A stretch of DNA of 64,000 nt from Cyanophora paradoxa CCMP329 (GCA_004431415.1 QPMI01000075.1:1-64000), one strand, 5' to 3'. Shown: positions 7,331 to 41,913, counted from the stretch's first letter. Numbers and translations are program-made. Notes: generated by a model not told the origin, from the sequence alone.

Positions 7331-7548
7331 TTTTTTTTTGCAAAAGTGGACGTCGCATTGATACACCACGGCAATGTATCAATGTTCTACGTGACGTGCC
7401 CTTCCGACGGTCATCTATCTAGCCGAGGGTGCTAGCTACGTGCGGCCATGGGTCGCTCAATATGGAGGTTCGCCTGAGTGGGGGAGCCATGGTTTTCGGT
7501 GATAGCCGTAACCAGACCACGCGCCACCCTTGATCAACTCCTCCATCC

Positions 7549-9760
7549 TCATGAGCCCTGGAAGTGAAATGTCTCGCAGTCCGCCGCCTCCCTTGCCGCC
7601 GCTCCGCCACGCTCCTCCTCCACTCCGCTCCTTCTCTCCTCACCTGCGCCCAGGACCCGATTAATCGGTGTCCCGTTTTGTCGAGTGAAGAAGGTGGTAG
7701 GAGGAAGATATGAGGAAGGAGAGGGAGTGGGCGGAGGCAGCAGCTTGGGGCGGGCAGCGGATGCGGGCAAGGCAGGGAGAGGTGCCGGGACGGCAGAGTG
7801 GAGAGAGCGTGGGCACTGACAGGCGACGCAGAGAGCTGGGAGTGCGGAGACGAGGCGGGCCGCGAGGGGTCGGGAGGGGTCGACCGGGTTAGAGGGGGGG
7901 GCCGAGGCCAGGGGGGTGGCCGAAGCCATGGGGTTGGCCGAAGCCAGGGGGGTGGCCGAAGCCGATGGGGTGGCCGAAGCCAAAGGGGGGGCCGAGGCCA
8001 TTGGGGGGGCCGAAGCCATAGGGGTGGCCGGAGCCAGCGGGGGGTCTGACACTTGAGGGCCGGTTGGGGTCGGGGGGGAGACCGTAGGGGGCCGAGGGGC
8101 AGCGTCTTGCGAGGTCCCGAGCGGGGGGGTCAGCTGAAGCGAGGGGGGGGAGGGGGAGTTGGCTGCTTGCAGCGTCGTAAGTGGTTTGTACACTCCGGGT
8201 GCAAAGAGGGACGTGATTGTGGGTTGCCCCGTGGGTATCGGCACCGTTCGCGCTTTTTTGGTCATGCGCCTGGGAGTCTTGCGGCCGGTTGCCTTTCTTT
8301 TCGCCGTGGTACGGGGGGCGGGTGTAGAGGCGGGAGGGGGAGGGGTCGCGGGGCGCGGGCATTTGGTGCCGGGCGGAGGGGTATCGGCTGTCCGTTTACG
8401 TGAGGCAGGCGACGGGCGTGTTCGTTTTGGGGAGGGGCCAGGGGGCCCCGGAGCGGGCGTTTGGAAGGTTGGGTAGTGTTCGTAGGACCGCGGGCGAAGC
8501 GGGCAGGATGCCAGTGTCGGAGTTCTCGTGTGACTGTCGTGCTGGGGTACCGCAGGTGAGGAGGTAGGGCAGGAGGTGATCTCAGGGCGGGCGGGGCATT
8601 TTCCCCGTCTGGCGTCGGAGTGGGCCTGGAGGGCAGATGCAGAGGCGAACCGAGTGCCGCAGGTGCAGGAGAAGTCAGACGTCCCGGCGGCGGGTCCTGC
8701 ATCGGGCAGCTGGGGGAGGGGGGGCTGGGGGAGGGGGCGACGGGAGTCGTGCAATTGCTTGGCGGAAGTTTTCCAAGAGAATCCATGGTTGGCCTTCCGA
8801 GCCCAATTCGCAGCAGAAGTCGGTGATGGAGATGGTATCATGGAGGAGGGGCGGGGGGAGGCGGGGGGGAGGGGGGACTGGGCGGCTGCACTAGAGGCGA
8901 GCGGGAGGGTTTGGAGTCTGCATGTTTGCGGTACGACGTTTGGTTCTGTCATTGATGCGTGTCGGAGCTCCCAGGCGTGGTTGCGGGCGCAGCGGTCTCT
9001 CCAGATCGCACGGAGGTGTTGGTCGAGGAGCAGCGCTAGGTCTTTTTGGATTGACGATGAGGTGGTCTTGTTGATGCCCAGAGCTGTGCAGAGGGCAGGC
9101 AGTCCTGCCGGGGTACCGAGGCGCAGGAGAGCGAGGGCGGGGAAGGGAAGCATGTCGGCCAGGGCCGGGCTGAGTTTTTCCCATAGTGTATCGGCGAGGC
9201 CGGGGGGGCGGAAGAGAGCCGGATTTGCGGTGGGGGAGAGAAGGGCGGAATGGAGGGGAGAGGCGGGGTCAGGAGAAACGAGGCGGAGGAAGGGGAAGAG
9301 TTGAAAGATGGTATCGTCGTGTCCTAGTGGTTTGGGCGAGTGGCGGAGAACCCGGGTACGGAGGAAGGTCACGAGTGCGTCCTGGAAAGCTTGGAGAAGG
9401 AGGCGAGCGGCGGGGCAAGTAAATATGTGGACGAAGTCTTCGGGGGGGTGGGTTGTGGGGTCGGGCGGTCTGGGGTCTGCGGCCACCGGTGGGGAAAAGG
9501 GCGAGGGGGAGCCCGGGGGGGTGCATGTGGCAGGGGGCGGGGAGGGGGGGGGTGGGGAAGCAGCATCTTCGGGATGGGGCAGGGGTGGAGGGAGGTGACA
9601 GAAGGGGCAGTGGGCGGTGCCGTCGGGAAGAGAGGGCCGTAGAGGTCGGGTCGTGGAGGAGGCGGATGGTGAGGGAGGGAAGGCTTCCAAGCATGCATTG
9701 GAATCTGACTTTGCGGAGGTGGTCGCCTGTGGGGGTGCGGCAGTCCGGTGGCTTGTCGGA
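7549..9760 (-). CDS. Retrotransposon polyprotein C-terminus: CCHC (zf-RVT-like) finger plus tail with C2H2-like finger, basic patch and PIP-like motif
   Basis: LRKVRFQCMLGSLPSL...CPFCH...EDFVHIFTCP and IWRDRCARNHAWE (typical APE-LINE C-terminus). Then FSCTCGTRFASASALQAH, KRKATGRKTPRRMTKKAR, QPTITSLF and 18-bp ASA(P/T)P(L/M) repeats at 7895-8040. Confidence 0.75.
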
Positions 9761-10559
9761 CACTAGGGAGAGGGCTGGAGCGAGGGTAACATGGGGGTTG
9801 CTGAGGATGGCCCCCGCGTTGCGAAGTTGGCGCCAGTCAAGGTATTGGGAGAGGGAGGCTTCGGCTAGGAAGTGAGGGCGGGGGTCCCCTCGACGCGGTA
9901 CGCATGGAGTCTGCCTCGGTAGGGCTCGGCCCCGGGACTGGGCCGTGGGATAGTGGGGGCGGGAGGCCAACACGGATGAGGAAGCATTTGAAACTGTGGG
10001 GAATGAAAAGAAGGGCGGAGAGGGGGCGTCGGGGCTGTTTTAGCAAGCTTGTCAACGGCGTCATTGTGGCGGTTGTCAGGGTGTAGGCTGGGTTCGGGAT
10101 ACGATTCTTAGCCGGGGTGCGGGCCGCCTCCTTCTGTGCGGCTGTTTTGGATGTTTTGGCGGACCGTGGTTGCGGCAGGGTGGCTTCACGGTGAGCGGCT
10201 TCAGTTAGGATGGACGCCGCTTCGAGTGGGGTAACGTGGACGGCCGGAAGAGACGGCGCGCTGTGGCGGAGGCTTCGTTGCGAGCCAGGTCGGCGAGCTG
10301 AGAGGCGAGTTCTTGGGCGTAGCGGGCGCCGGAGGGAGGGGGTGGCGGGCCCTTCGGGGCGGGGCGGGGGAGACTCAAGCACAGTTGGGGAGCGCGGGAG
10401 GGCTGGATGGTTGGGAGAGGATGGTGGGGAGTCGAGGTAGGGAGGGTGCCGCGGTGGAGACTGGGGGCGGCGCGGCGGATGGTACGCCCGGGAAGGTCGG
10501 CGGGGCCGGAGGGCCGGGAGGGTTGGGCTGCAGCATAGGGGTCAAGGGTGACGGACCCG

Positions 10560-11200
10560 TAGCAGAGGCTGAGGGCAATATATTCACGGTATCTGCGGAG
10601 CGCTGCAGCGTCGGCCTGAATGTAGGCTGGGGGCGGGCAGGTCCGACGGGTAAGTGCTGAGGAGCGACTGAGTAGGTCAGCTGTGAGGAGGAGGAGTGGA
10701 CCGCAGGCCGTGCTGTTTGGGGCTGGAGAACGGAGAGGGATGTCTCCGGGCGTAGATAGGTCCATCTGCAGAAGGGAGTGGGGGGAGGGGAGATCCAGAG
10801 TCGCGCTGACTCCAAGTGGCCGCCAGTCTTGTGCAAAGGAGACAAGGTGATCAGGGACGTCGAGGGAGCCATTGTAGAAGTAGAATGAGCGCGTCTGTGG
10901 AAATAGAGCAAGTAGGTGCCAGTGTCCCGGAGGTCTGCTGGAGGAAGGGGTCAGCGAGGGGCTGGTGGGTCTGTTGAATTGGGCAATAGGTGAGGATGGG
11001 ACGAGAACAAGGCGGGCATCGAGGAGTCGTCCGTGGGGATGTATCGGTGTAGGGGGAGGAGGGCAGAACCCCGAGAGTCGAAGTGGGAGGCTGCGCTAGC
11101 AGGGTAGGAGCTGGACGATAGGAAGTGAGCAGGGTGGGGCGAGGCCAGGGCGGCTTCACGGGAAGAGAGCAGGTCAAAAAAGGCTTCCACGAGGGGGAGG
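10560..11200 (-). CDS. Ulp1/C48-like cysteine protease domain (copy 2, catalytic residues apparently present)
   Basis: Across frames: VEAFFDLLSSRE..AHFLSSS.Y; GHWHLLALFPQTRSFYFYNGS; (Q)PNSTACGPLLLLTADLL; RRYREYIALSL. This matches the C48 order HW...D/N...Q..C. Confidence 0.7.
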
Positions 11201-11719
11201 CTGAGGGGGGCATTCGGACGGAGGTGTAAAAGGTCGCCTCGTCGAATGAGTGAGTAACAGTGAGGGTCGGCTCGGGGGGCGGGTGGGAGGGGGGGCTTCG
11301 ACGCGAGGGTTTGCTCCGCGCAATAATCATTGTCTGCGAAGCGGAAGGCATTCCCCAGCCAGCTTTCCTCCGCCAGCGTCAGCGGGCGAGGGAGGGGGAA
11401 TTCAGTCGGGTGGACGGGGGTTCGGCCTGGGGAGGCATGCGCAGCTGGGTGGGCCGCGGGCGCCGGAGGGCGTGGATTGAGGAGTGGGCGTGGAGGGGGT
11501 GGAGGGATGTGGGGAGGGGAGGGGAGTTGGGGGACCGGGGGTGTAAGGGGCGAGGGGAAGGGGGGGACGGAAGGAGGGGGGTGGGGTCTCGTTTGCGTCG
11601 GACCCGGCGCGGGCTTTTGCTGCCGTGTGCTGGAGGGGCGGAGCTGGTGCGTGGGGTCGTGCGCTGCCGTTTTGTTGTGAAAGCCGGGCCGTTGGCCTGG
11701 ATTGTCCCAGGAGGACCTC

Positions 11720-12330
11720 AGGGTCCCGGAGGAGGAGAGCGGCCGCCCAGCGTTCCCGGTAGATGGGGGCGTGGAAGGGAATGGGCGGCCCGTCCTTTGC
11801 CGTACAGGTGGACTTCCTCGCCGCGGCCAATGAACTCAGCGGCGGTCATGACGAAGAGAGCGTCTTCACCGTGTGGACGTGTTTCCAAGCTTGCGTGGGA
11901 AGGTGCTGGTGTCGTATTTCCAGGCGAGCGCGGGAGGGTCGCCGGGGCGGAGGGTCGCCGTCCACCATTTGAGGACCCAGTCTTTAAGAAGGACCGTGAC
12001 GTCGGAGGCGGGTTTGCGGGTGACGTCCAGGATGCGGATTTCGCGGAGGCGGGCTGAGATGATTGCTAGTCGCCAGGGTCGGGACCCAGAGGGTGGTAGG
12101 GGAAGGAGAATATAGTCGTACTCCGTTGGGGAGAAGGGGTGCGGGACGTAGGATCGGTCCGTTAGCGGCCGGCTGCGCGGGTCTTGAGCGAGAGGTGGAG
12201 GGGCTGTGCCCATGAGGATTGAGGTTGCGTGGGAGGACGAAAGAAAGAGCACTTGGGGGTGGTGGGGCGTGCAGCCGGAAGGAGACTTGCCGGTTCTGAA
12301 GAAGTCTGAAGAAAGCGTCAATGGGTTCTG
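11720..12330 (-). CDS. Ulp1/C48-like domain (copy 1, degenerate)
   Basis: YDYILLPL..PWRLAIIS..REIRILD; GEDALFVMTAAEFIGRG; IYRERWAAALL. The C48 fold pattern is present but the catalytic His and Cys are replaced. Confidence 0.55.
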
Positions 12331-13559
12331 CAGGTATGGGTTGTTCGAGGAGAAGGGTGTGGCCAGGTGGGCCCCAGACCGGGGGTTGGGGTCGATGAGG
12401 GAGAGAGGAGCCGCTCTAAGGGCGGCCAGGCGAGATTTTATGCCATCAAGGAGGGAAGTACTCGGCGGTCATACCGGGGCCGTCAGGATCGATGGCAGCC
12501 GAGTAGGGAATGGCTCGGCGGCCATATCGTTCGAACAGTATGGGGAGGGCGCCGGTTTGGTCGCGGAGTGGGAAAGTGGTGGGTGCCGGGCGGGGCGGGG
12601 TGGGTGGCAGTGCGGGCAGGATAGGGCAGGTCCCGTGCCCATTGTTCTGCGATCAGGGAGGAAATGGGGAGTCCCACATGCCAGGATCACAGCGGTGGTA
12701 CGCGATCAGAGGGCACCAGCCTCAGCTTGGGAGGTGGGGGCAAGCGTGAGATCTTCGTCCCAATACCAGGCGGGAGAGGCGTGTCGCGGTCGGCGGGACA
12801 GCCGGTTTGCAGAGGGAAGTTTGATAGAAAGTCCAGCTGGGGCCGGGGCCCGAGGATGGGCTAAGTGGTGGTCGAGGGCGAGCTTCCTTGTAGGCCCGGG
12901 GTCGGGGTATTCGGCGTCGGGGGGGTCCTCGGGGAGTGGGTGAAGGAAGATTGGGTTGGGAGGGGAGTACCATTGGAAGGAGATGTTGCGAGTGATGTTT
13001 TTGCGTCCGAAGGCTTCTAGGAAGGCTGAGTAGGCGCGGAGGATGTCGCAGTCCGAAGTGATGGTGAGATGTGCGTCGGAGGGGAGGAGAGCGTGGTTTT
13101 TGGGGATGCGGATGCAGCGGTTCCAGATGAGAGTTTCCTCCGCTGCGAATGCCCGTTCGAGTCTAGCCGACGCGAGGGGGACGAGGTCTAGGATCAGGTG
13201 GGTGTTGGTAGTATCAGAGGCGTCGACATATTCGGCTAGGTCCGCCTGGCAGCGGAGGAAGTTGTAGTCGGCCGGGCTATCTGCTAGAATATATGTGCGA
13301 AGATGCCGGCGAGGCGGAAAGAGGGACGAGAATAGCGACGGGGGAGGGGCGAGGAGGAGTCGTCCGAAAAAAGGAGTCGGGCGTCGGGGATGTCCATTCC
13401 ACAATATAATGATAAGGGCCGAGGCAGGGAACGTCTGCGGGGCAGTAGGTGGGGGGCAGCTGGTCCGCTGAGGGGGACGCGGGGTCGGCGGGGGAGGAGG
13501 GGACGGGCGTCGGGTCGCCTGTGGGTTGTAGCCGTTGCGGTTGGCCGCGGAATGGTCTT

Positions 13560-13980
13560 TGGTTGGTGAGAGGGACCCATTGGAGCGTGATTTGGAAGTT
13601 TGGGTCTTGAGCGATACGAATGGCGTATTGCGTGCGAGCGTTGAGGAGAAGGGCCCGTCTTCTCGGCGGAGCAGGGTGCGGAAATTGATAGGGTGGGAGA
13701 AAGAGGAGGGGTCTCGGAAGGCGAAGGCTGTCAGGGCCCGGATAGTGTTTTGGCTGTCCGTGATAATTTTCCCACCGTGGGCCCGAAGTACGTGAATGCT
13801 GCGGAGATCGCGCCTGCTAGCTCTCCCAGGTTCACGTTGTGTTGGACACCGGGAGGCGGTGGGCGAACTCGATGTGGTTAGGTAGGTCGGGATTATTTTC
13901 GAGGGGTGCAAGGCCGGCGTAGGTGGTTCGGACTGATGCGGAGCCCTGTTTTTGTGTGCTGGCGTCCGTGTATATTACCC
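13560..13980 (-). CDS. RNase H domain of the retrotransposon
   Basis: Joined frames give VIYTDAS...NVNLGELAGAI...IITDSQNTIRAL...ITLQWVPSH (D, E, D and His loop). Confidence 0.8.
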
Positions 13981-14817
13981 GGGGAGTAGGGTCGGGGGGG
14001 GAGGTGGGAGTTTAGGGCACGGAGCGTGGGGCAGAGCTCAGCGAAGAGGGCTCGGGAGGTGGCGAAGAGGAAGTCGAGCCCGGTCGAGGAATCATAGAAT
14101 TCGCGGTCGGCTTGTGAGGGAGGGTCCTCGGGCGTGGGCGTCGCTCGAGGCGACATTGGTGGCCTGGGCTTCCGCGCGAAGGAGTCCCACCAGTCAGTTT
14201 CCCGGAGCAGAGGTCGATGAAACCAATATGTGTGATTTCGCGGGGGAGGTTGGGAGGGGGAGTTCGGGGTCATATTGGGCGGAGGGGGTTTCTGAGGAGG
14301 GGTCGAGGCGGGCTTTTTTAGCTGCTCTTGTGGGTTGAGCGCGGGTGGGCTGTTGTCCTCTGAAGCGGGAGCATGGGAAGGCGGGGGCGGAGTCGGGCAG
14401 CTGCCGGGAGCGGGTGGGAGCCGGCCTATTTAGGTTGGAGAGGCTCGGAGACCAGCCCTTCGATTCGCACGAGGAGCCCGCTGGAATTCGGCGAACGTGG
14501 GATGCGTACTCGACCCAGCGGCAGGCCGTTGTGGAGAGGCCCAGCTCGCGATGGAGCTGTTCGGAGCCGCAATATTTTGGGTGGGGGCAGAATTGGAATT
14601 CGAGTCTGCGTTCACGCCAGGCAGGGTCGAGTTCAAGAGCTGATAGGCCGGGGTCGCGTGTGGAAAGTCCATCGTATGGGGTGAGGCAGTAATGGACGAG
14701 TTCCACCCATAATTATACTCTGAGTCTCGGGGCAGTTAGGGTCCGCGTCGGGGTCCTCGGGAGCCAGTTCGTCCGGGTTTTCGTCCGGGAGAGGGGGTTT
14801 CCCGACGACGCGACCAA

Positions 14818-17657
14818 CTAGGCCTTGGGACGTCCAGACAAAGTCACCAATTTTGAGTCCCGCAAGGACGGCGTCGGCTTGGAGAGAGCGACGGATGTCT
14901 GGGATAGAGGGCGGCGGGGGCATGGGGTATCGGGGAGGAAGGGGGACTGGATGGAAGGGCGGGGAAGAGAGAGTTCTTCGCGGACCGCGTCCCACCAGGA
15001 GGGGGCACGTTTGTAGTATGCCGGGACACGACCATGACTCCAGAGGAGGGACCAATCAGCTAGTGAGCCGTCGGAGGACGTAATGTCACGGATGGTGAGG
15101 AGGCCGCAGCGATAGAGGCGCTGGCCGGCTCGTTGGAGGGTGAGGGGCGTCAACTGTGATGATATAATGTATTCTCGGCGAAGGTGGGACCGTCGGGAGG
15201 GGAGGCCGTGCGTCCAGGAATCGCATGTTGTGAGGATGTGGTGGGAGGTGGAAGTCAGGTCTGCCGTGATGGCGAGCGTAATATTTTTCTGTAGTGTAAG
15301 GGGCCCCGAAGGAAGGTTCGGATATTCATGTGGGAGGAGAGGGAGCCCGTACCGGGCCTGGGTGTCGAGGACGCGTTGTCGGTATATTTGGCCGTAGAGT
15401 GATGATGTGTGGGAGGCGAGTTCCTGGCGGAGGCGCTCGTCGACGCACTGCTGTTGGCGTTGGATGACTGCTATTGAGGGAAGGCGATAGATGGAGGAGA
15501 ATGCAGCCGTGGAGACGGACTGGGCCAGGTTGGCAGTATGTTTGGCCGCGGTGAGCCAAACAGCGTCGAGGGACTGGCATTGGGATGGCGTTAGGGTCAT
15601 GATGCGGAGGGGGTATGACAGTTTAGGGAAGAGAACCCGGTGTAATATCACTTGGAATTCGTGAACGGTAATCTTTTTCGTGGCTAGGATCGAGATTGCG
15701 GATTGGAGCTGGGATTTGAGTAGGCGGACTTGGTGGGTCCAGGACAGGTTCGCAGTAAACTGGACGCCGAGGACGCGGAAGGGCGTTGTGGGGGAGAGGA
15801 TGTGGCCAACCTCAGCTCTGGATCCCGGAATCGCCAACTCCGACATAGTATTTGCTCTTGACCGGCTCTTCGGATCGGGGGGGTTTCCAGTGAAAAATTT
15901 CCGTCTTTTTGGCGTTCAAGTTCATGCCATGGACATGTAGAAATTCGGACAGCCAGTCAAGCATATGTTGGAGGCCCTGAGCCGAGCTGGCAAGCATGGT
16001 GGTGTCGTCGGCGTATGCAAGCACAGAGACTTTGGGGCAGGGACCGGCGGGGAAGTAGAGGGGTTCGCCAGGGCATGGTGGGCGGGGGGAACGGGGGCGG
16101 GTCGGATCAGATCGGTGCGGCCCAAGCTGGTAGCCGAAATTGGACTGAGTCGCTCGTTCTTCAATGGCGGTGAGAGCGGCGTCGAAGAAAATGCGCCAGT
16201 GGAGGGGGCTTCGATGCCACCTTGGGGAGGCCACAGGGACTTGAAAATAATCAGTGCGGCCGTGGGGGTAAGGATGCACGCCGTGCGGTGTTGAGCTGCT
16301 TTTTTGTGGAGGGCTATATATCGTTTCCCTTCAGGATGGAGGTGGAGTTGGATACGTTAAGGCTGAGCTCTTGGCTATGCCAGGAGACACTGTCGTAGGC
16401 GCTGGCGATATCCCCCAGGCCGCCAAAGATTGGCTTTTTGAACTGGTGCGCGTCCTCGAGGGAGGATCGGAGGGCGTAGAGGACAGGGTCGGTAGATTCG
16501 CGGCGACAGAAACCATAATTACGGCCGCGTAGAATGTTATGTGTATCAATGCGGTCTTCCATGCGGTGGGTCAGGAGGCCCGTGACCAGCTTCCAGGTGA
16601 CTTCTTGAAGGGTGATGGGGCGGAGATCGGCGAGATCTGCTGAATTATCTCGTTTCGGGATAGCGTAGACTTGGCCGCGAAGTGCGTGGTCGGGCACGTG
16701 GCCGAGAAGAGTGGATTGAACTAGAGATCGGATGGCGTCGCGCGAGGTGGTCCAGTGGGCCGCGGACTCGAAGCTGTTTATCTCGTCTGTAGAGTGTGAG
16801 GCGGCTAAGGTCTGGCGTTCCGTCTTGGAGAGGCGGAGGGGGGACCAGAGCATTTTAAGCATTCCGTTCGTGAGGCCGGAGGGACCGCCAGCGCCATTGG
16901 ACAGGGACGAGATGAGGCGATCGAGTTCGGGGTCCTCTGGCATGGCCATTAGCCCGTCCCAGACGGCGGGGGCGAAGTGGGAAAGGGGTCGGTACTGGCT
17001 TTTCCAAAATCTGCCCAACCAGGCGCCGTTTTCAATGACCTCGAATTTCGTAGCTATGGCATCCAGGTTTGGGGCGGCCTTGCGGAGTCGCCAGAAATTT
17101 TTGAAGTGATCCAGATGTGCGCGTTTAATTTCAGTGGGATCAGTGAGCACTTCGGGGAGTCCCGCTGCCGTGCGGGTAAGATACTGGCGAGGGGCGGATC
17201 GGAAGCGGGAGAGAAGGAGTTGAATAGCCCGACCCATGCTTCGACAGTGGGACAGGAGGTGGCGGCGGGTGTCAATATTGCGAGCGATGTCGGCTTCGGT
17301 GTATGCGCGGCGATGATTGTCCAGGGCGGCCCGCGCCTGTAAATGCCACATGCTGAGTTGAGCATGGTACTCGGCGATTTCAGATCCTGTAATGATACCA
17401 TTCTCGAACTCAGGGTAATTAGGAGGGTCGGGGAAAGCGAGGAGGGAGGGGCAAAATGCCAGCGTGGTGTCCGAGCCCGCAGATTTTCGGATGTCTGTCA
17501 CGTCTTTGGGAAGGTCCCGGAAAACGGCCCGAATAGTTTCGTCAGGCGGGTGGTCTGTGGAACCTTGGCGCGCCCAGTCGTTTAGGGCCTGTCCGACGCG
17601 GCCAACAAGTTGTTCGTCGTCAGCGTCCAGCGCAGACAAGTGGTTGAATTTAGCCAT
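14818..17657 (-). CDS. Reverse transcriptase of non-LTR retrotransposon (frameshifted in this assembly)
   Basis: IPKRDNSADLADLRPITLQE; NYGFCRREST; DIASAYDSV; GLPQGGIEAPLHWRIFFD (joined frames); LAYADD at 16004-16015; FRVLGVQF; LFPKLSYPL. Confidence 0.95.
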
Positions 17658-18029
17658 ATCGCCCTGGGCGGCTACTCGGTGTTGGAGGACTTTTGCAGTA
17701 GAGAATTCTTTAGCGTGAGCGACGGACTTGATACTCTGGGCGATTGCGCAGAGGAGGGAGCGGTGGGATTTCGTGGCGCGGCGGGCGTAGTCGGGCTGTT
17801 TTCGGGAGTGAGAAGGAGCTGGATATACCGCTGACCGTGTTTATTGAGAAAGGCTTCGACAGCGAGCTTGAAAGCAAGCCGGATTGGTGCAGGCTGGGCG
17901 GCATAGTTGAAGAGAGGGGGAGAGGCTGGGTCGGGCTGGCGGGGGCGGTCGGGGGGCAGAGAGCACTCCTTCGGTTGTGAAAGTCGCCAGTACTGGGAAG
18001 TGATCGGCTGAGAGCAGGGGGAGGTCGTC

Positions 18030-23470: not shown

Positions 23471-23499
23471 ATGCTGGACGTGCCGGGCGGCGGCGGGGA

Positions 23500-24730: not shown

Positions 24731-24780
24731 GCGGTAGGGAGATAGTTCAATAGCCTTTTTATGAATTTGATGCCAGGAAG

Positions 24781-31630: not shown

Positions 31631-31804
31631 AATGCCCGGGAGCCCTGAGCCCTGAGCTTCTCGTAAAATAATCTAGATATACACAAAGGGGCGCTGATAT
31701 CATCTCCAGGCGCTCCCATGTGCCAGTAACTCAGTATCCTTTTGATGGCAGACAGAGACTTCTGTGCAAAGAAGTGCGAAGTCACCGCGCTGAGGATAAA
31801 TGGC

Positions 31805-32600: not shown

Positions 32601-32739
32601 TCCGCTCTGCAACACGCAGCACTGCAGGAAGCGCCTCCGCCCTATCCTGGAAGTCACGCGGCCGCCTGCCGCGCCTCCAGACCCGCCGCACACCAGCCCC
32701 TGGGCTTCATGCGGCATCTTCCGGTATCCTGTGTTACCG

Positions 32740-35647
32740 GCGCGCCCCGTCAGCGACGCGTACGCGTCCCCTCAGCGACGCGCACGGGCCCAGCCGGCTC
32801 ACCTAGGCAGTGTAGAAGAATGTCTCCCAAACTGCGACGATCCGAGGCGGCTCACCCATCCCAGCGGTCTGGGCCTCTTCAGCCACATGCTCGCGCGTCG
32901 TTGGCCCAATGCTGTGCTTGGCAGGCGCACCCGAGGCGACCGCCGATCGGGAGGTTGCGTCGGTCCGCGCGCTCACGCAGCGCTCGGCCAGTCCAGAGTC
33001 AGAGGCACTGCGTGAGCATCTCAAAGGGACGCTCTATGCACCGAAACATGCGAGAGAGCTCCGCCGGCGACCAGAACCGCATCCACGGCCGGCGTGCACC
33101 TCAACCCTCCAAATCGACCGCGGGGATGTCTGGTAGAGATACTGCGGATGTAAGTGAGCTGAACGCCACGCAAAGAACCCGGCCAGCACGGCGAAGTCAC
33201 CCAGCGCTGCGTTGCGGGCCCGGTCGATCTAGCTGTGGATCGGCGCGGCGCAGGGACGATGCTACTGGGGGAGCTGGACCCATGGTTACAAGCTCGCGTG
33301 CTCGTAGCTGCCGTGCGCTGCGTGCTGCGAGCACGCGCGAAGGTGCCGCAGCGGGAGGCGCTGCGTGCACCGCCTGCGCCTGGGGCAAGCGAGGGCCGCA
33401 AGAGCCGTTGGCAATCGCTTCAGACGGCTTCGGAAAGCTATACTACGGCGCGGCTGCCGCGGCGGCCCTGCCGCTGTGGGCCTCACAAGGCTTTTCCCAA
33501 CAGTCGTGTACCCCAAACTTGCTGCCTTAAAGTGCCTTCAAGTGCCTTGCTGCCAGCAGCTGCAGCCTCGACTGAAGGCTGCCGCGCGGACGCGCTTCAC
33601 TCTCACAGCGGCTCGGTTCGTTCGCTCCTCCGGGGTCTCGCAGCGCTGCCCGCGTCTCTGACTCCGCTTTTCAAACCAGGTCGAACGGACTTGCTGCCGC
33701 CGCAGCGAACATCGTCGGCTTCAGGCGCGAACGATGCTCGAAGGTACTTTCTTGCATCCTCTGCCCCTCTCGCCGCCTGTCGCCCGCCTGATTTCAAACG
33801 CAGAGCCTTGCTTCAGGGCGGCTGGTGCCCGGTTGCGGCCGCGAATGCTCGCGAACGCATCGCTATCGATCTCCTTGTTGGCTTTGTCGTCCATTCCTCC
33901 CGCGGCTGTCGCCAATGGGCGTTCTGCCGCTGACAGGCACGCGCGGAACGTAGGCGGCGGCTGCGGAGGCTAAGCAAGGTGCTTTTCGTTTCCTCTCCTT
34001 TGATTCAATCCCTCATTCCGCTGGCGGGCCAGGGAGCGGGCGTGACTGGTCCCCGCGAGCAGAACACCACCGCCCAGTTCGCCCGGCGCCTTCTTCCGCA
34101 GGCCAGGTGCTCGCTCTTGTCTCCGCTGCTCGTCCTTCGATCTTGTTGTAACGCCGGCGGCGTGCGCAGCGCAGCGCGTGCCGCTTTCCGGACGTGTGGC
34201 CCAGTGGCTGCTGGGATCGGCCTCGGAGTTCATGCTTGCGGCCGCTCGGGCGCAGGTGCGGTCGTTTGCCGTCGCGCATTCTTCTTTTCTTTCGATTGAC
34301 GCTCCAACTGCAGCGAGCGCTTCGCCCTCGCCATCGCCGCCGCGGTCGCGGGAATCCTAGCCGCGGGGCGAGCTCGAGCCAGTCAGCTGCTCCCTCTCCT
34401 AGCCGAGGTGCACAGCGTCCCGTCCGGTTCCGCTTGATGCGAGCGCTCGCTAACCGCGATGCGCACAGCGCAGCGGGCCCGGCGAGGTGCCGCATGACCT
34501 GCAGCGCGCGGGGGCAGCATCGCTTCGCGCCTTCCCTTCCCACGTGAATTCCTAGTCGCGTCGCCCGGGCCGGGCCCTGTGCTTGCTGGGCCGCATGCGC
34601 AGTTGTGTGACAGCCGCCGGTAGGCCGTGTAGCAGAGCCGCAGGCAGAGAATATCAATTTCATTTACAGGGAACCGCTAGCTACGTATGCATGCGCGGGC
34701 GAACTTCGGGCTTGCCCAAACTTTGGTACTGCGCAGCCTGGCGAGAGCAAGTGCACGTGTGAGCGTCGGAGGCGGCCGCTTGAGCGCCAGAGCTTGATTC
34801 CACCCGGCGGCGCGGATCTGCGTAGAGGGCGCATCTCGTCCGCCCGCAGCCGGCGCGGCCAGCTCGTTCGGAGGCTGACCCTTGACGTGGGGGGTGAAGA
34901 CGAGCGCTTTCTGCGAGAGGCCCGAGCTAAGGGGAAGCGAGCTAAGGGAACGCGGTCCGCAGGGGCCGCGAGCGCGCACCGCCGGCCACATGCTCGCGCA
35001 CGCTCGCGCTGTCGCGCGGGCGATCCAGGGTCCTGCGCCGCGAGCGCGCGTCGTGAGCTGTGCGAGCGCCCGAAGCGAGGGACGCGGAACCGCATCCGAC
35101 TGGGACGGCGTGGGACGGGGCACTTGCGGCAGCTGAGGCGATCGATATCTGCGTGCTGCGACCGCCAAGGCTGCAAGGCGCGGAGCTGAACTGAGGATGC
35201 GCGGCCACCGCCAGAGCCGATGGGGACACGCCCCGCGCTAGCAAGCTGCCTAGGCTAGCGCCCAGGCTAGCCACGCCTTGGTAGAGTGCGCGGCGCTCGA
35301 CGTCGGCTCGGTCGCGGCGACCTCGAGCTCTCTCCCGACGCGCAGTGCAGCTAGACCGCCGAACTGCAGCTGGGGCTTTAAAGCTCGGGCTTGAGGGCAA
35401 GCCCGAACTTCAGCCCAGAGTCGAGTCTCAAACTTTGGGCTTGACCAAAGTTTGGGCAAGCCAAAAGTTCAGGCAGAACTTTTGCCCGATTTCGGTCAGA
35501 ACTTTGGGTTTACCCAAAGTTTGGGCAAGCCCAAAGTTCTGCCAAGAGTTGAGGCTCAAACTTTGGGCTTACCCAAAGTTTGGGTAAACCCAAAGTTTGG
35601 GTAGGACTTTGGGCAGAAGTGGTCAAATGTCAAAAAGTGCAGTTATA
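32740..35647 (-). repeat. Right terminal inverted repeat (~2.9 kb)
   Basis: Reverse complement of 20586-23470, with internal indels and a diverged patch. Confidence 0.93.
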
Positions 35648-35849
35648 GCGCTGCGCGGGCGGAGGCGAGGCGCGGGGCGCGCTGGGGCTCGGCGGCGGCT
35701 TCACTTGAGGTCCAGGTCCGTCAGCACGGGCGCGGTGCCGGGCAGCGGGGCGACCGACAGTGTTCTGCAGGTCGCGCGGCGCGGGCGGAGGCGAGGCGCG
35801 GGGCGCGCTGGGGCTCGGCGGCGGCTTCACTTGAGGTCCAGGTCCGTCA

Positions 35850-36771
35850 ATTTGCGATCACTGAATTCGCACACACCGAGACAGTACAGCTAGTGATGTA
35901 ACTGGGGTGTCTGACTGTGTCATGTCGAAAGGTAACAATTTAGGCTAAGGCGCAATGCTAGCCATCAGAAACCGGACAGGGTGGAGCTATTGTACTGAGG
36001 AAAGCGACCTACACACACCTAGCAACGCTACTTACTCCTACCTAGAGAGCCAAATCAGGACAGAGCAACCATAACCCCCCCTCAAGACGTGGGAGCCTAC
36101 AGGAGAGAACCCAGGTATAAGCGAGGATATGGGGTTGGAGCCGCGCAGCCTGAACTATAGCCCTCCATCTGATAGGGAAGATGCGCACTAAGGGAGCAAA
36201 GCCAGCTAACCCCAGGGAGGGCCGGAAACCGGAGCCCGTGAGAGCCCGGGTGAAAACCGGCGGGCGCACAGCATCGCCGGCCGAAGCCGGCGACCTGTGC
36301 TCCTCGGCCGAGAGATACCTCCTCCAGCTGGCGCGCGTGCGCACGCGGAATCCGCTGCAGCGGGGTTGGGAGGCCCGGGCCGCCCGAGTGCTCAGAAGCA
36401 CGTCGCCTCGCCAGGAATCCAAGCATCTGTGCGGCCACGACGCCCACGGCCGCGACGCGGGCGTGCACTCACACGACCGGCGATCATCTGCGCGGGCGCA
36501 GCGCAGGTCGCCGACCCCATAGCCGCGGGCGGCCGATCGCTACCGCAGAGAAGTGCTTGGGCTGAACGAGAGAGCAGCTGCTAAAGCCGCCGCTGGTGTC
36601 CGCTGGAGTGGCTCGCCGAACCGACCCACGGAGCGGATTCCTAACGGACGCGCGGCTAACCAGCTAAAGGAGGGATGGAGGCGCCACCGAGGCGATTCGC
36701 GGCAGCCGGAGAGGCGCCCAGCGGGCAGGAGCCCGCCACCTACTTTCTCTCCAGGTCGGGGTACGCGAATC
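35850..36771 (-). mobile_element. 922-bp insertion with 15-bp TSD (probable 5'-truncated or non-autonomous retroelement of a second family)
   Basis: TSD ggtccaggtccgtca at 35835-35849 and 36772-36786. Its left ~130 bp is homologous to 47669-47800. Orientation is inferred. Confidence 0.8.
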
Positions 36772-37870
36772 GGTCCAGGTCCGTCAGCACGGGCGCGGCG
36801 CCGGGCAGCGGGGAGGCCGACAGCGTCCTGCAGGTCGCGCGGCGCGGGTGGAGGCGAGACAGGCGCGCTGGGGCTCGGCGGCGGCTCCACTTGAGGTCCA
36901 GGTCCGTCAGCACGGGCGCGGCGCCGGGCAGCGGGGCGGCCGACAGCGTTCTGCAGGTCGCGCTGCGCGGGCGGAGGCGAGACAGGCGGCGCGCTGGGGC
37001 TCGGCGGCGGCTTCACTTGAGGGCCAGGTCCGTCAGTCCGGGCGCGGTGCCGGGCAGCGGGGCGGCCGACAGCGTCCTGCAGGTCTCGCGGCGCGAACGG
37101 AGGCGAGACAGGCGGCGCGCTGGGGCTCGGCGGCGGCTTCACTTGAGGGCCAGGTCCGACAGCACGGGCGCGGCGCCAAGCAGCGGGGCGGCCGACAGCG
37201 TCCTGCAGGTCGCGCGGCGCGGGCGGAGGCGAGGCGCGGGGCGCGCTGGGGCTCGGCGGAAGCTTCAATTGAGGTCCAGGTCCGTCAGCACGGGCGCGGT
37301 GCCGGGCAGCGGGGTGACCGACAGTGTTCTGCAGGTCGCGCGGCGCGAGCGGAGGCGAGACAGGCGGCGCGCTGGGGCTCGGCGGCGGCTTCACTTGAGG
37401 TCCAGGTCCGACAGCACGGGCGCGGCGCCGGGCAGCGGGGCGGCCGACAGCGTCCTGCAGGTCTCGCGGCGCGGGCGGGGGCGAGGCGCGGGGCGCGCTG
37501 GGGCTCGGTGGCGGATTCACTTCAGGTCCAGGTCCGTCAGTCCGGGGGCGGTGCTGGGCAGCGGGGCGGCCGACAGCGTTCTGCAGGTCTCGCGGCGCGG
37601 GCGGAGGCGAGGCGCGGGGCGCGCTGGGGCTCGGCGGCGGCTTCACTTGAGGGCCAGGTCCGACAGCACGGGCGCGGCGCCAAGCAGCGGGGCGGCCGAC
37701 AGCGTCCTGCAGGTCGCGCAGCGCGGGCGGGGGCGAGGCGCGGGGCGCGCTGGGGCTCGGCGGCGGCTTCACTTGAGGTCCAGGTCCGTCAGCACGGGCG
37801 CGGTGCCGGGCAGCGGAGGGGCCGACAGCGTCTTGCAGGTCGCGTGGCGCGGGAGGGGGCGAGGCGCGCG
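36772..37870 (-). repeat. 126-bp coding tandem repeat, right part (~8.7 copies; ~15 in total with 20040-20585 and 35648-35849)
   Basis: Same 42-aa unit in ORF 36540..39527. Confidence 0.95.
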
Positions 37871-40800
37871 GGGTGCAGGGGCCCGGCTGCACATGTGGCA
37901 GGCGAGGCGTGATGCAGCAGTGGCCCCGGCAGGTGGTTAGACCCTGTCCGTCGATCCAACCGGTAGACGTCGGAGTGGTCATGCTCGAGGGCCCCTGCAG
38001 TCGCGTGCGGCCGCAAGCGAGGAGGGCAGCAGTAGCTCCAAGAGCAAGGGCAGCGAAAAGGGGACTGGGTAGAAGGGGGATGAGGCCTAGGGGAAGGTGC
38101 AGGACGGGTTGCGCAGCAGCGGGTTGAATGTGCGCCAAGAGGGCGGCGATGATGGTGAGGAGCTTGGGGGAGTAGTGTGGGTACGGGGCTTTCTTAAAGG
38201 GGCCACGGGGGGATATAGTGTCTAGAGCAGTTTGTAGGGCGTGGCCGACTAAGGCGGACACGGTCACTATCGAAAGAAATTCTAGGGGCTCTGGAGGAAG
38301 AACTAGGAGGAGGAGGAAAGGCAGGGCAAACGGTGCAGCCAGCACAGCCGGGGCCAGGCCCGGGTCATCTGAGACATAAAGTGCATGCAGGAGATCAGCC
38401 CCGAGCTGCCATAGTGCACAGGAAAGCACATGCCATTCGGCCGCAAGGAAGGCCGGGAAAATAATGGAAAATTCAAGGAGGCGGGGTGCGAGAAGGAGAG
38501 CGAAGTCGGCGAGGCGGGTCCAAGCAAACGCTGCCCGGCGGCGTGCCAAGGGGGACAGGACCGGGGGGGGGGCGAGGGGAGGTCGGGGGAGGGACAGGGC
38601 AGGTAAGGAGTTGAAGAAGAGCAGGGCCGGACGAGTCAAGAAGCCGCCGGCGGCGCCGGGAGAGGAGTGCGAGCAGGAGGATCCCGGCAGCTGGCGGGGG
38701 GGGAGGCAGGGGGGTAGGGGGAGGCGGGAGCGGGGGGAGGGAGAAGGGTGGGAGGGGGGGAGCAGTTGCTCGGGGTGTCCTAGGAGGAGGGGCGGGGGGA
38801 GGGCTGGTCGAGGGGGCCGGGTACGAGGGATCAATGAGCCATAGTGGGGACACGGGAATCGCTGCAATAACGAAGCGGAGGGCGCCGAAAAGGTGAGGGG
38901 CAGTTGTAAGGGGGGGTAGGGCAAGGAAACAGTGAAGGGAGAGGATAAGGAGGGGGACCCCGCGGTAAGGGCCTCCACATCGACGCCTTCGAGCTCGTCG
39001 CGCACGCTGGGCTTGCCGGCGGGCGCGGGTGAGGGGGGGACGGTGGGCGTTGGGAGCGGGATCGGGGGAGGCAAGATGGCGGAGGAAGCGGGCAGACAGC
39101 AGGAGGAGAAGCAGCGAGGGGAGGGCGAGGAAGGCGGGGGAGAGCTGAAGATAAGACGGGGGCCTGATAGAAGGAGGGGAGGAAGAGGCGGGAGAGGCGG
39201 GGAGAGGGGGCGGTGCCCTGGGGGTAGTCCACCAGGGGAGAGGGAGGGGGTCAGGGGGGGCCGAGAGAAAGGGCGATTCCGCGAAAGCCGCTGCTGAGGG
39301 GGTCCAAGGGGAGGAAAGGAGAGTTCTATGTAAGAGCCGGGCAATAAAAGGGTGCAGGGGGGGGTATTCTGAGAGGCGGGGGGGTAGCTGGAAGAGAAGT
39401 GAGAAAGGGGGTAGTGAGAGGGCGAGGAGAAAGGAAAGAAGAAAGAGGAGAGAGAGGGCGGAGAGGGCGAGGAGCTCGGGGGTTGTGATATGGGGCAGGA
39501 GAGGACACGAGCCATGTAGGAAGGCATGAAGGGGGGAAGTGGAGGCCGTACAGGAGGGAGGGGGGTCAGGGGCTGTCGTTAACGGGCTTCGGCACGGCTC
39601 CGGGGCGGGCTGGGGGCGGGGCTCTCGGGCTGGGCGGCGGCGGTTGGCGCGGCCCTTGAGGCGCCGGGCGAGGAGGGGCGGGCGGGGTCGGGGAAGGGAG
39701 CAGCCAGACGAGAGCGCAAAGCGGACCGTGAGGCGGACACCCCGGGGCGGGGCAGGAGAGCTGGCGAGGGAGCTGGCCTGCGGAGCCATCGGGCGCGTCC
39801 TCACAGCTGCTGGGGGGGGTAAAGAGGCCAGCTGTTCCGGAGGGCGAGGGCGGCTGCAACGTTACGACTTGCCCGTGCCGTCGAGAAGGGAGGGCGCGCG
39901 GCAGGGCGTCAGCGGGCGCTGGGTACGGGGGCGTACACGATTGGACGTTGCAGGACGGAGGCCAGGTAGGGGAGGTCGGGGCGGGAGGCGGCGCAGCAGA
40001 AACCTGCAGCTCAGCCGGTAGGGGGGGGGGGGGGGGGAGCTGAAGAAACGGCGGAGGCGACGCGGATGACTCTTCCGCGAGGCCCGGGGCCGGCGAGGCG
40101 AGGGACGGCTCTGATAGGGGGAGAAGGGCGAGCGCGGGAGCCAAGGAGTTGCACCAGCGAGGGCCGGGCGGGGTGTAGGGCAAGAGCGGGGGCGGGAGCG
40201 GCGAAGGCGCCGGCGGGCGGACCTCGGCAGGGGCCGCCAGGGCCGGCGACGGCGGCAGGGCGTGGGGCCTAGCAGCGGGGCGGGGCGGCGAGGGGGGCGG
40301 AGTAGGCGCGGCGATCGGGGGCCCCGGCGGAGGCCCGGGGGTCCGGGTTCGACTTCGCGGGGGGCGGGCTCGGCGGCATCGTCTAGGCGCCGGCGTCGTC
40401 GGACATAGCCCCGGACGCCGATTCCCACGGACAGGCTAAGCGCCATGAGTATCGCCAAGGCGGCCCAGCTGGGACTAGATAGGAGCCCGAGGATCTCAGA
40501 GGCGTAGACGTAGGGAGGGGAAGCCCAGGTGGAGGGTTCAGCTAGGGGCCCGAGGACCGGGGCAAAGCTAGCCGCCAGCGGGAGGAGGGTGAGGAAAAGA
40601 AAAGAAAACAGACCAAAAGTGGAGACGCCATGCCGGAGACCCAGTTTCCTGCGAGGAAGGTGTGGCATGAGAGGGTCGAGGTGGAGAGGCGGGCGGCGGG
40701 CGGGCGGGCGGGCACGCGCGCGCGGCGGAGAGCGAACAGCAGGGGGGCATCTTACCCCGGTGAGCCTTGCGGCCCCGGGGGATCGACGCGCGGGTTGCCT

Positions 40801-41300
40801 ATCCTCGGAGAGCCGGGCCGCGCGACGACGGCGTGTGGCCCCGTGGCATCGGCGCAGCGGGGGAGACCGGACGGCTAGCCAAACCGCACGACGACGGTGT
40901 AAGGCCCCGTTACATCGGTTCCTGTGTGGATTGAGGGGGGGCTTATTCATGGATAGCCAAACCGCACGACGACGGTGTAAGGCCCCATGACATCGGCCAG
41001 AGCGAGGCATGCCTTTAGCGTCGGCAGCGAACGCGGGGGGCACGTCGTTCGAACGTCGGCCGCCCGCGCCCGCCACGCAGTGAAAGAGGGGTGATTTGAG
41101 AACTGCGGGGCGGGCGTGAGGCCCGGGCGGGTGGCGCGAACGACGCGCGAGGCGGGGTGATGTCCCTTCGCAAGGGCGCATCGCACGGGGGCTTCTGCAG
41201 GAAGAAGGAGCATGTTCAGGATGTCGCCGCCCGGCTCGAGTTCCGTCGCGGGCGGCGTGTGCTGTTCGGTGGTCGCGCGGCCCTGGAATGGGCGCGGCGC
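36772..41300 (-). CDS. Retrotransposon N-terminal region, parts 1-2 (Pro-rich, several hydrophobic/TM-like segments); start uncertain
   Basis: ORFs 39862..41559, 38473..39804 and 36540..39527. Hydrophobic runs include FGLFSFLFLTLLPLAASF, WAALAILMALSLSVGIGV, APFALPFLLLLVLP, LLTIIAALLAHIQPAAA and LFAALALGATAALLA. Confidence 0.55.
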
Positions 41301-41913
41301 CACATCGTTCGACTCCCTCTGCACCGCCGAGCTGCGACGCCGCTAGGCTTGAGCCTTGTTGTTGGCGGTGCGTCGCGAGCCTGAATTGCGGCTCCGGTGT
41401 GCTCGGGCGGTGTCCTCCGGCTCCGTTTGGTGCCGGGAGGCTGCTTATGCTGCTGGACGATGCGCTAGCATCGCCAGTTTCCCGTACGCGCAGGCCTTCG
41501 CGATGGCCTGGGTACATCGTTTTTTTTTTCCACACAAAAATTGCGGATGGGTACATCACACAAAAATTGCGGATGGTTTTTACTAGCTACCGTCACTGAG
41601 TCACTTTATATGTCTGATGCCTCAAAAAGCTTGCGCTCTCTGCAGCTGGTGTAACTGGCGATGCACATATGGTTTACGAGGTCCGCGAAATGGTTTCCTA
41701 CCGTCAAACTGCAAGGAAGAAGAAAGCAAAGGGCAGCAGCATTTAAATCAGGGACCGTGATACGGAATTAACAAGAAAGGAAAAGCGTAAAACAAAACTG
41801 TTTTTGTGCATACAGACGAGATCTGTAAATATACAAGAGATTACGCTTGCAGCTGAGAATAGAACATCCTAGCCTAGATCTAGCTTCACGAGCTATTCAA
41901 AGATGCCCCCTAG

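Follow-up and report, generated by a model that had tools for sequence, protein, structure and literature searches.

A probable giant APE-type non-LTR retrotransposon with tandem C48/Ulp1-like modules in Cyanophora paradoxa

Dualen-1_GCr, a cryptophyte LINE, encodes a protein of 5,287 aa with SET, C48, AP-endonuclease (APE), reverse transcriptase (RT), RNase H, CCHC and restriction-like endonuclease (RLE) domains (Lescot et al. 2016, PMC5029228). The Dualens of Chlamydomonas carry APE, RT, RNase H and RLE together with a Josephin-like protease (PMC9977147; Kojima and Fujiwara 2005), and Dualen has been reported to lie between the RLE and APE clades (PMC4640811). Among RLE-type LINEs, NeSL-1 and Utopia-1_TSP carry a Ulp1-like protease at the N-terminus of the protein (Kojima and Jurka 2015, PMC4640811). 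Since Dualen-1_GCr carries a C48 domain, Ulp1-type proteases are not confined to the RLE-only NeSL elements, and giant size is not unique either (PMC5029228).

We analyzed a window of 64,000 nucleotides from the glaucophyte alga Cyanophora paradoxa CCMP329 (QPMI01000075.1, positions 1-64000). A preliminary description had proposed that this window holds a giant LINE of an undescribed lineage. The claim of novelty is weakened by Dualen-1_GCr, which is already giant and already combines C48, APE, RT, RNase H and CCHC (PMC5029228). The element is rare and poorly described, and comparable giant LINEs are already known. We consider it probable that positions 7330-41557 on the minus strand represent a single full-length giant APE-type non-LTR retrotransposon, with two unrelated later insertions in its array of 126-bp repeats.

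The 3' end of the element is marked by a poly(A) tail of ten residues (7330-7339, minus strand; T10 on the plus strand), which directly abuts a 16-nt copy of the target-site duplication (TSD; 7314-7329, minus strand). The 5'-side copy (41557-41573, minus strand) has 17 nt and is followed by the resumption of the flanking repeat unit; the sole difference between the copies is one A within an A run. The tail described earlier is therefore present, although its start had been placed one position off at 7331, and so is the duplication 34 kb apart, with lengths of 16 and 17 nt instead of 17-18 bp. The flank consists of a diverged tandem repeat of ~235 bp, in which an intact unit junction (7080-7117) matches 41557-41596 at 87.5%, so that the empty site can be reconstructed from the split repeat, just as had been suggested. 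Self-BLAST revealed neither LTRs nor TIRs at the ends, and the features by which LINEs are recognized (A-rich 3' tail, TSD and absence of terminal repeats) are thus present. The 3' UTR (7340-7647, minus strand) has a conserved terminal motif: over its final ~45 nt it can be aligned with the terminus of a related element in an environmental contig (locus L001, about 11820-11864), where a short A-rich tail is followed by unrelated flank.

The A10 tail and the 16/17-nt TSD within the ~235-bp repeat are marks of target-primed reverse transcription. In such a process, the APE would nick the target DNA, the RNA's poly(A) would be the site where the RT primes, and the target duplication would result from a second, staggered nick. 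The 5' junction is more complex than the preliminary description had recognized. An extra 39 nt (41519-41557, minus strand) comprise a repeat of the element's first 9 nt, a further (third) target copy and a second A10. These extra nucleotides weigh against reading the locus as a simple full-length insertion.

Two insertions are foreign to the LINE. The first (20586-35647; 15,062 bp) has terminal inverted repeats and a 6-bp TSD (20580-20585 and 35648-35653), and it measures 15,068 bp including the duplication. Its termini are near-identical, its inverted arms extend over ~2.8 kb, and it contains an internal 700-bp satellite with 9.8 copies. The second (35850-36771; 922 bp) is flanked by an exact 15-nt TSD (35835-35849 and 36772-36786) with a spacing of 937. 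When both nested insertions and their duplications are removed, a net element length of 18,222 bp remains; the earlier values of 15,068 bp, 937 bp and ~18.2 kb were accurate. In a repeat-rich region, the locus might be an assembly chimera and the 34-kb structure absent from the genome, as the satellite, the long inverted arms and the tandem repeats found here all assemble poorly. However, the TSDs of all three insertions are clean and match, and beyond each insertion the interrupted sequence resumes exactly. Since a chimera would not produce this combination, we regard such an artifact as very improbable.

Sequence comparison establishes the 3' 11.2 kb of the element as one predicted ORF2 of ~3,740 codons that is conserved throughout its length. 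This ORF2 (7648-18876, minus strand; about 3,743 codons) contains 66 frameshifts and one stop in the assembly and was aligned to P0005, an intact single ORF of 3,720 aa on an 11,942-bp environmental/metagenome contig (L001). P0005 matches the RT piece of the window with an E-value of 2.7e-142 and 50% identity. Over the whole ORF2, a frameshift-aware alignment yielded 3,596 aligned pairs with 44% identity, colinear with window positions 18876-7648, and identity was 29-69% in every 100-aa bin. The same colinearity was seen by tblastn. The presence of an intact, colinear ORF of this length in an independent contig indicates that the long region after the RT is genuinely coding and belongs to one conserved protein. 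In addition, the window shares 100% identity with a EukProt gene model of 211 aa, and the near relatives are without exception Cyanophora proteins, in agreement with C. paradoxa or a close relative as the probable host.

ORF2 begins with the APE domain. A long linker separates it from the RT, behind which lie a conserved RT-proximal region, RNase H, a Cys/His region and then, in tandem, the two C48/Ulp1-like modules. The protein continues with a CCHC knuckle and a helical domain and ends in a low-complexity tail that contains the PIP-like motif and, at its terminus, a further Cys/His motif. The minus-strand order proposed earlier was confirmed for APE and RT and is supported, less firmly, for RNase H, the two C48-like modules, CCHC and the PIP-like motif; the position given for a second RNase H and the C2H2 finger were not supported.

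The APE domain (17982-18876, minus strand) lies N-terminal to the RT and was recognized by Pfam Exo_endo_phos with 24.5 bits (32.7 bits for P0005). Its catalytic motifs are conserved in the alignment of the window with P0005. The RT core (15760-16660, minus strand) with its YADD/FADD motif scored 39.2 bits against Pfam RVT_1 (65.7 bits for P0005) and is 64-69% identical to P0005. Both domains, listed in the preliminary description, pass Pfam. The ends, the TSD, the APE and the RT agree on a giant APE-type non-LTR retrotransposon of ~18.2 kb without the nested insertions. Between RNase H and the modules, the conserved stretch with a CxxCH motif (12490-13544, minus strand) is 29-46% identical to P0005 residues 1800-2135 and had neither a Pfam nor a PDB match.

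When compared with the PDB, the RT matched R2 proteins at 2e-10 and not one L1 ORF2p at E<=10, the opposite of a control APE LINE, which does match L1 (1.8e-27). For this reason we rejected membership in the L1 clade. The element resembles L1 (human L1 ORF2p) in the order APE-RT-CCHC, the poly(A) tail, the variable TSDs and a PIP-box-like motif, which has been reported in L1 ORF2p, but it exceeds L1 about threefold in size and contains RNase H and protease modules. In the RT tree, window and P0005 were paired (support 1.0) within a clade (0.81) that consists mainly of Cyanophora proteins. This clade includes LINE proteins of ordinary size from C. paradoxa (EukProt, e.g., P0157 with 1,408 aa), which are the nearest RT relatives and show a similar preference for R2 over L1. 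Proteins of the P0157 type align with P0005 across APE and RT (blastp 1e-100, 29% identity), and no blastp match was found past P0005 residue 1323. The C-terminal extension of 2,400 aa is therefore a feature of the giant family alone, with the reservation that the gene models could be truncated.

For RNase H, we used a profile built from 37 LINE RNase H domains. It matched the window at E 5e-8 (model positions 5-109) and P0005 at E 3e-7 (9-135), covering the N-terminal three quarters of the domain with the D, E, D and H positions (13545-13990, minus strand). Pfam itself gave no match in window or P0005, and hence the RNase H of the preliminary description was recovered with our own profile only. 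The helix bearing the last Asp is absent at this match, but a matching motif, N-D-x-V-D-K-L-A-K (10030-10075, minus strand; HMMER, model positions 135-151), is present in window and P0005 alike, ~1,160 aa further downstream. It is exactly complementary to the N-terminal match, and alone it is not significant. The RNase H fold may be interrupted after the conserved His by an insert of ~1,160 aa that holds both protease-like modules, and the last helix would follow this insert. What had been taken for a possible second RNase H-like remnant ahead of the protease modules is this short C-terminal-helix motif, and it is located after them.

In module 2 (10640-11215, minus strand), His, Asp, Gln and Cys occur in order, with Asn in place of Asp in the window. 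In P0005, D follows H by 17 residues and Q and C are six apart; the window reads H, N, Q, C. We take this spacing to agree with that of yeast Ulp1 and use it as a lead only. Pfam Peptidase_C48 (PF02902) matched P0005 alone (residues 2624-2729) with E 0.0086 and 16.4 bits, below the cut-off of 20.7. A phmmer comparison of module 2 with the PDB was without match, and its AlphaFold model (pLDDT 40.5) was too poor for use. Module 2 would act as a cysteine protease, either in processing of the polyprotein or in removal of SUMO/ubiquitin-like modifiers.

Module 1 (11800-12390, minus strand) was recognized by hhalign to module 2, with a colinear alignment of 158-198 columns (E 3.9e-4 local, 1.7e-5 global). 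Its catalytic positions are occupied by Arg, Gly/Ala and Ala in both window and P0005, and neither sequence has the catalytic His or Cys. Judged by these residues, module 1 is likely an inactive paralogue. The earlier assignment of two Ulp1-like domains agrees with the catalytic set of module 2 and with the alignment between the modules, but the Pfam score is sub-threshold and module 1 lacks His and Cys. NeSL-1 and Utopia-1_TSP likewise have a Ulp1/C48-like cysteine protease fused into the LINE polyprotein; theirs, however, is N-terminal, and these elements have an RLE without APE, are site-specific and are much shorter. Membership in NeSL/Utopia was rejected, as the element has an APE, no RLE was found in it, and its protease modules are C-terminal to the RT.

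The CCHC motif (CxxC ... HxxxC with a Pro-rich insert; 9415-9609, minus strand) is conserved in P0005 and is followed by an all-helical conserved domain (8959-9414, minus strand) with 50% identity to P0005. The AlphaFold model of this domain (pLDDT 61.7) predicts no strands, and no PDB match was obtained by Foldseek (E<3) or phmmer. In the poorly conserved tail, the PIP-box-like motif Q-x-T-I-T-S-L-F (8203-8226, minus strand) forms a conserved island, T-I-T-A/S-F/L-F, that may bind PCNA. The C-terminal CxxCxC...H motif (7798-7830, minus strand) is conserved with P0005 ~3655-3670. P0005 thus keeps both the CCHC and the PIP-like motif of the preliminary description, but not its C2H2-like finger.

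The region after the CCHC bears on whether the element is a divergent Dualen/RandI member whose RLE was lost or is too divergent to detect, which on comparison with published Dualen descriptions is possible, if rather doubtful. Like the element, Dualen/RandI are giant, show the order APE, RT, RNase H and CCHC, carry an extra cysteine protease and occur in algal/protist hosts; published Dualens share most domains and the size (PMC5029228, PMC9977147). By proxy, an RT nearer to R2 than to L1 also fits the intermediate position of Dualen (PMC4640811). However, the RLE that defines Dualen/RandI was not detected. No PD-(D/E)xK pattern occurs after the CCHC in window or P0005, the region is predicted to be all-helical while an RLE requires a beta-sheet, and it had no PDB match although RLE-bearing R2 proteins are in the PDB. 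Furthermore, the C48 modules are in tandem and located within or after RNase H, whereas the C48 of Dualen-1_GCr precedes the APE. The element also differs from Dualen-1_GCr in having no SET domain, from Dualen in general by the repeats and hydrophobic stretches of its 5' region, and from Dualen-4b_cRei, for which very long duplications have been reported, by a TSD of 16-17 nt.

Upstream of ORF2, the 3' part of an ORF1-like region (18855-20585, minus strand) is open for 599 codons, and its stop (18855-18857) overlaps the start of ORF2. TRF detected 126-bp repeats in it (20058-20585, minus strand); further units lie between the nested insertions (35654-35849, minus strand), followed by an array of 8.9 copies of the 126-bp (42-aa) unit (36772-37887, minus strand; 89% matches, 0% indels). 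The total of about 15 copies bears out the ~15 repeats of 42 aa reported before. A single frame is open through every unit, and the variable columns per codon position (13/9/15) show no bias (p 0.47). In the 5' non-repeat part (37888-41518, minus strand; ATG at 41517, its second nucleotide), the longest ORFs have 563 and 552 codons, compared with a mean of 286 and a maximum of 508 after shuffling. These lengths are only modestly above those of shuffled sequence, which, like the lack of codon-position bias in the repeats, weighs against counting the 5' part as the element's coding sequence. The hydrophobic segments described earlier exist (windows 38049-38513 and 40438-40611), but their reading frame is uncertain in this C-rich stretch.

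The 5' 6.6 kb may represent ORF1 of the element or form the N-terminal portion of one ~5,950-codon ORF. Its only links to the element are the target duplication and the C-rich composition: C makes up 46% of the sense strand in the 5' part and 42% in ORF2, and the flanks are unlike both. Searches with the 5' 6.6 kb gave no homologue, no Pfam family and no second copy, which weighs against its membership in the element. Alternatively, the true LINE would consist of ORF2 and UTRs (~11.6 kb, from 7330 to roughly 19,000), with the 5' 6.6 kb being host or foreign sequence acquired by 5' transduction from an upstream promoter or by a template switch onto another RNA. The second A10 and second target copy at the 5' junction are signs of template switching, and the coding evidence for the 5' part is only moderate. 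L001, which ends 296 nt upstream of ORF2, has nothing in common with the 5' part in these 296 nt; its ORF2 starts at its own ATG ahead of the APE, after a stop and a 177-nt spacer. In the window, by contrast, ORF2 has no ATG at its start, and the upstream frame overlaps it by ~50 nt, so the sense ORF continues from the repeats into ORF2. The single ORF of 5,500-6,000 aa proposed earlier was not confirmed by these comparisons. Moreover, the extreme sense-strand C-richness is equal on both sides, the period of 126 bp is divisible by three with all units in frame, and L001 likewise has a separate upstream ORF ending just before ORF2, without similarity to the window. We therefore consider this composite origin unlikely and favor a single element that includes the 5' part.

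The state of this single element depends on how the 66 frameshifts in ORF2 arose. They are accompanied by only one stop on the homologous reading path of 3,743 codons. A base appears to be missing in 47 of them and to be extra in the other 19; 25 of the 66 lie directly before a Pro codon (p 5e-7), with enrichment at C runs. Indels of 1 nt in G/C runs, like the ORF2 shifts, also occur in the local 700-bp satellite. Because of the enrichment at C runs, assembly errors fit better than decay. Most of the shifts are probably run-length errors of long-read assembly, as had been supposed when they were attributed largely to homopolymers, and the copy would be young and possibly intact. The Cyanophora genome has a GC content of 67.6%, and Canu and Quiver were used to assemble it from PacBio RSII reads (PMC6704402).

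If the frameshifts were instead real mutations, the copy would be an old, decayed pseudogene. Polishing of the published assembly made use of Quiver and of Illumina reads (PMC6704402), and there was time enough for two later insertions into the element. Between the inner inverted arms of the first insertion there are 17 substitutions but only 2 gaps, and 13 units of the 126-bp repeat (~1.6 kb) contain no 1- or 2-nt indel, compared with about 9 expected at the ORF2 rate, which is a poor fit to a uniform assembly error rate. Against this, one stop contrasts with 66 shifts, among which 1-nt contractions and C runs are favored. We thus regard decay as distinctly unlikely: the TSD copies differ by one A, the A10 tail is intact, and the catalytic motifs of APE, RT and module 2 are preserved.

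The element lies on the minus strand at approximately 7330-41557, and its 3' end is an A10 tail, read as T10 at 7330-7339 on the plus strand. A 16-nt TSD adjoining this tail (7314-7329) recurs at 41557-41573 with one added A in its A run. The insertion site (6900-7329 and 41574 onwards) is a diverged tandem repeat of ~235 bp with a lower GC content. An intact junction between two repeat units (7080-7117) matches 41557-41596 at 87.5%, so that the empty site can be reconstructed and the TSD cannot be read as two adjacent repeat units. The preliminary description had proposed two nested insertions, and the sizes measured by self-BLAST and direct reading agree with it exactly. The first spans 20586-35647 (15,068 bp including a 6-bp TSD), and the second 35850-36771 (922 bp with an exact 15-nt TSD, spacing 937). 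Both reside in a 126-bp tandem array, which after their removal is continuous as ~15 units of 42 aa. The net length of the element is then 18,222 bp.

The 15-kb insertion has terminal inverted repeats with near-identical termini and looks non-autonomous; no transposase was detected by Pfam in its large ORFs. Its inverted arms measure ~2.8 kb, with an inner part that is 98% identical, and 9.8 copies of a 700-bp satellite form the core of the insertion (24785-31631). Subterminal palindromic short repeats and GC-rich minisatellites of 40-48 bp are also present. The 922-bp insertion is without poly(A), tRNA-like part or notable ORF, and may be a truncated retroposon from another family.

The 3' ORF carrying the APE and RT domains (ORF2, 7648-18876) belongs to a rare family. 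An exhaustive search of 1.84 billion representative proteins with the RT piece returned a single close relative, P0005 (E 2.7e-142, 50% identity). The same search found a EukProt gene model of 211 aa with 100% identity to the window, and the remaining near matches were all Cyanophora paradoxa proteins. P0005 is one unbroken ORF of 3,720 aa on L001, a metagenome contig of 11,942 bp. As seen by tblastn and by a custom frameshift-aware protein-to-DNA alignment, it is colinear with window positions 18876-7648, with 44% identity over 3,596 aligned pairs (29% in the lowest 100-aa bin). The two elements also resemble each other at their 3' termini, each of which carries an A-rich tail. The end-to-end colinearity and the alike 3' termini indicate that the 2,700 aa past the RT belong to one protein and are conserved as coding sequence, rather than being noise of a C-rich strand. 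An 18-bp tandem repeat in the ORF2 tail (8.4 copies, 7893-8042) codes for a Pro/Gly-rich hexapeptide repeat that is absent from P0005.

JGI metagenome contigs scanned with an APE alignment and with an RT alignment yielded no further relatives, and the window ORFs had no exact match in the contig collection. Short window fragments were misplaced by MAFFT and were left out of the alignment. A length-filtered search, from which longer or shorter kin could escape, found no homologues of the P0005 region with the two protease modules described below. In L001 (11865-11942), a short A-rich tail is followed by flank unlike the window target. A shared insertion target for the family is ruled out, the downstream flank of L001 being unrelated to that of the window.

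Pfam searches of window pieces identified Exo_endo_phos (APE) at 17713-18906 and RVT_1 (RT) at 15815-16330, with a weaker RT match in 16317-17840, all on the minus strand. Both assignments are secure. Pfam found no family in most other ORF2 pieces. RNase H was detected in the window (E 5e-8) and in P0005 (E 3e-7) with a custom profile of 37 RNase H domains taken from other LINE matches; the detected part includes the D, E, D and H positions. In both proteins the match ends at the His, and HMMER placed model positions 135-151, the last helix, ~1,160 aa downstream. This distal match, a conserved N-D-x-V-D-K-L-A-K motif, is not significant alone; in model coordinates it is the exact complement of the N-terminal match. 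It is thus possible that the RNase H is split into two pieces.

Between the N-terminal RNase H match and the distal helix motif sit two mutually related C48/Ulp1-like protease modules (module 1 at 11800-12390, module 2 at 10640-11215), colinear by hhalign with E 4e-4 (local) and 2e-5 (global). Module 2 matches Pfam Peptidase_C48 below threshold in P0005 (E 0.0086), and its His, Asp, Gln and Cys, with Asn in place of Asp in the window, come in the order expected. In module 1, the catalytic positions are occupied by Arg, Gly/Ala and Ala in both proteins. The AlphaFold model of module 2, made from a four-row alignment, was too poor for a structure search (pLDDT 40.5). Further downstream, P0005 retains the CCHC motif, the post-CCHC helical domain, the PIP-like motif and the terminal Cys/His motif; the C2H2 finger proposed earlier for the tail is not conserved there. 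The RNase H, module 2, post-CCHC and uncharacterised regions, one query piece being in the wrong frame, had no matches in phmmer searches of the PDB.

A restriction-like endonuclease (RLE) is the defining feature of Dualen elements. No PD-(D/E)xK pattern was found in the window element or in P0005. The post-CCHC domain is predicted to be all-helical with moderate confidence (AlphaFold pLDDT 61.7), Foldseek returned no match for this model, and the region had no phmmer match in the PDB, though RLE-bearing R2 proteins are present there. These four results argue against a second endonuclease in the element. The RT itself matched only R2 structures in the PDB (2e-10), and L1 ORF2p was not matched even at E 10; a control APE LINE taken from that match list did find L1 (1.8e-27). 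In the RT tree, the window element and P0005 are paired (support 1.0) within a clade (support 0.81) made up largely of Cyanophora LINE proteins of ordinary size. The RT looks nearer to R2 than L1, a point relevant to the origin of APE LINEs from RLE LINEs.

The homologous reading path through ORF2, with each break entered as X, contains 66 frameshifts and one stop. Shifts resembling a missing base number 47, and those resembling an extra base 19; 25 of the 66 immediately precede a Pro codon (background 13%, p 5e-7). Where conservation is high, the shifts can be assigned to C runs of 3-5. A first homopolymer test found no excess of runs of at least 5 within 15 nt (28% vs 26%); it was too blunt, and the C runs of 3-5 emerged at the codon level. 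Most differences among the copies of the 700-bp satellite are likewise 1-nt changes in the length of G or C runs, and such indels occur at ~0.5-0.6% per base both there and in ORF2. The Cyanophora assembly was built from PacBio RSII reads (PMC6704402). Given the pattern of shifts and satellite indels, and with tail and TSD both intact, consensus errors of the long-read assembly fit better than neutral decay. Thirteen 126-bp units are without such indels, which does not fit the assembly-error reading, and in the GC-rich inverted arms the indels are rare; polishing of the assembly looks uneven along the contig. On the reading as consensus errors, the locus marks a long-read assembly stretch with ~0.6% run-length errors.

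Between the ATG at 41517 and the stop at 18855, the 5' third has 40-46% C on its sense strand, long open frames and hydrophobic windows in which several frames are open. Its longest ORFs (563 and 552 codons) modestly exceed the shuffled maximum of 508, and the 126-bp repeats show no codon-position bias. No large piece of this ORF1-like region matched a Pfam family, and the hydrophobic piece had no homologues in a length-filtered search, which longer or shorter kin could escape. Upstream of ORF2, L001 and the window showed no similarity when their DNA was aligned. TSD, composition and frame continuity tie the 5' third to the element; it may still represent a 5' transduction. The preliminary description had proposed one giant ORF. 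Within L001 1-296, a separate upstream ORF has its stop 177 nt before the ORF2 ATG; in the window, the upstream frame runs ~50 nt into ORF2, an overlap that includes C runs and offers ORF2 no ATG. From this spacer and this overlap, a single ORF and two ORFs cannot be told apart. At the 5' junction, 39 extra nt (41519-41557) lie between the outer TSD copy and the element body, comprising the element's first 9 nt, a second target copy and a second A10. This content points to template switching or to a very small second retroposition; our guess would be a switch of template as reverse transcription ended.

A typical LINE measures 4-8 kb and has a minimal enzyme set; elements of 16-18 kb with acquired proteases and modules show how far non-LTR retrotransposons can grow by domain gain. 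Dualen-1_GCr (5,287 aa) is a giant LINE with C48 peptidase, APE, RT, RNase H and CCHC (PMC5029228), and Ulp1-like proteases occur in NeSL and Utopia elements (PMC4640811); the protease of Chlamydomonas Dualens is of another kind (PMC9977147). Unlike Dualen, NeSL and Utopia, the window element has no detectable RLE, carries tandem C48 modules within or after the RNase H, differs in its 5' region and is set in a glaucophyte. Since giant C48/APE/RT LINEs are already described, these four differences make it a new variant and not a new kind. The family would be a second, independent case of C48 protease capture by an APE-bearing LINE, here in a glaucophyte. If real, the RNase H split and the paired protease modules constitute a testable domain insertion, with possible self-processing of a LINE polyprotein. 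The full reading is one we hold only tentatively and consider rather unlikely as a whole: an undescribed, early-branching glaucophyte APE-LINE lineage without RLE, its RNase H split by an insert of ~1,160 aa with an active and a dead C48 module, and its 5' third encoding a repeat-rich, membrane-like protein that is possibly fused into an ORF of ~5,950 codons. If true, such a single ORF would rank with the longest known from retrotransposons.

GC content in the window ranges from 59 to 79%, and Rfam and tRNA scans of it gave no matches. Within a stretch of 77-79% GC, an ORF on the plus strand (54825-56840) contains leucine-rich repeats (Pfam LRR_8, LRR_4) and is probably part of a host gene.
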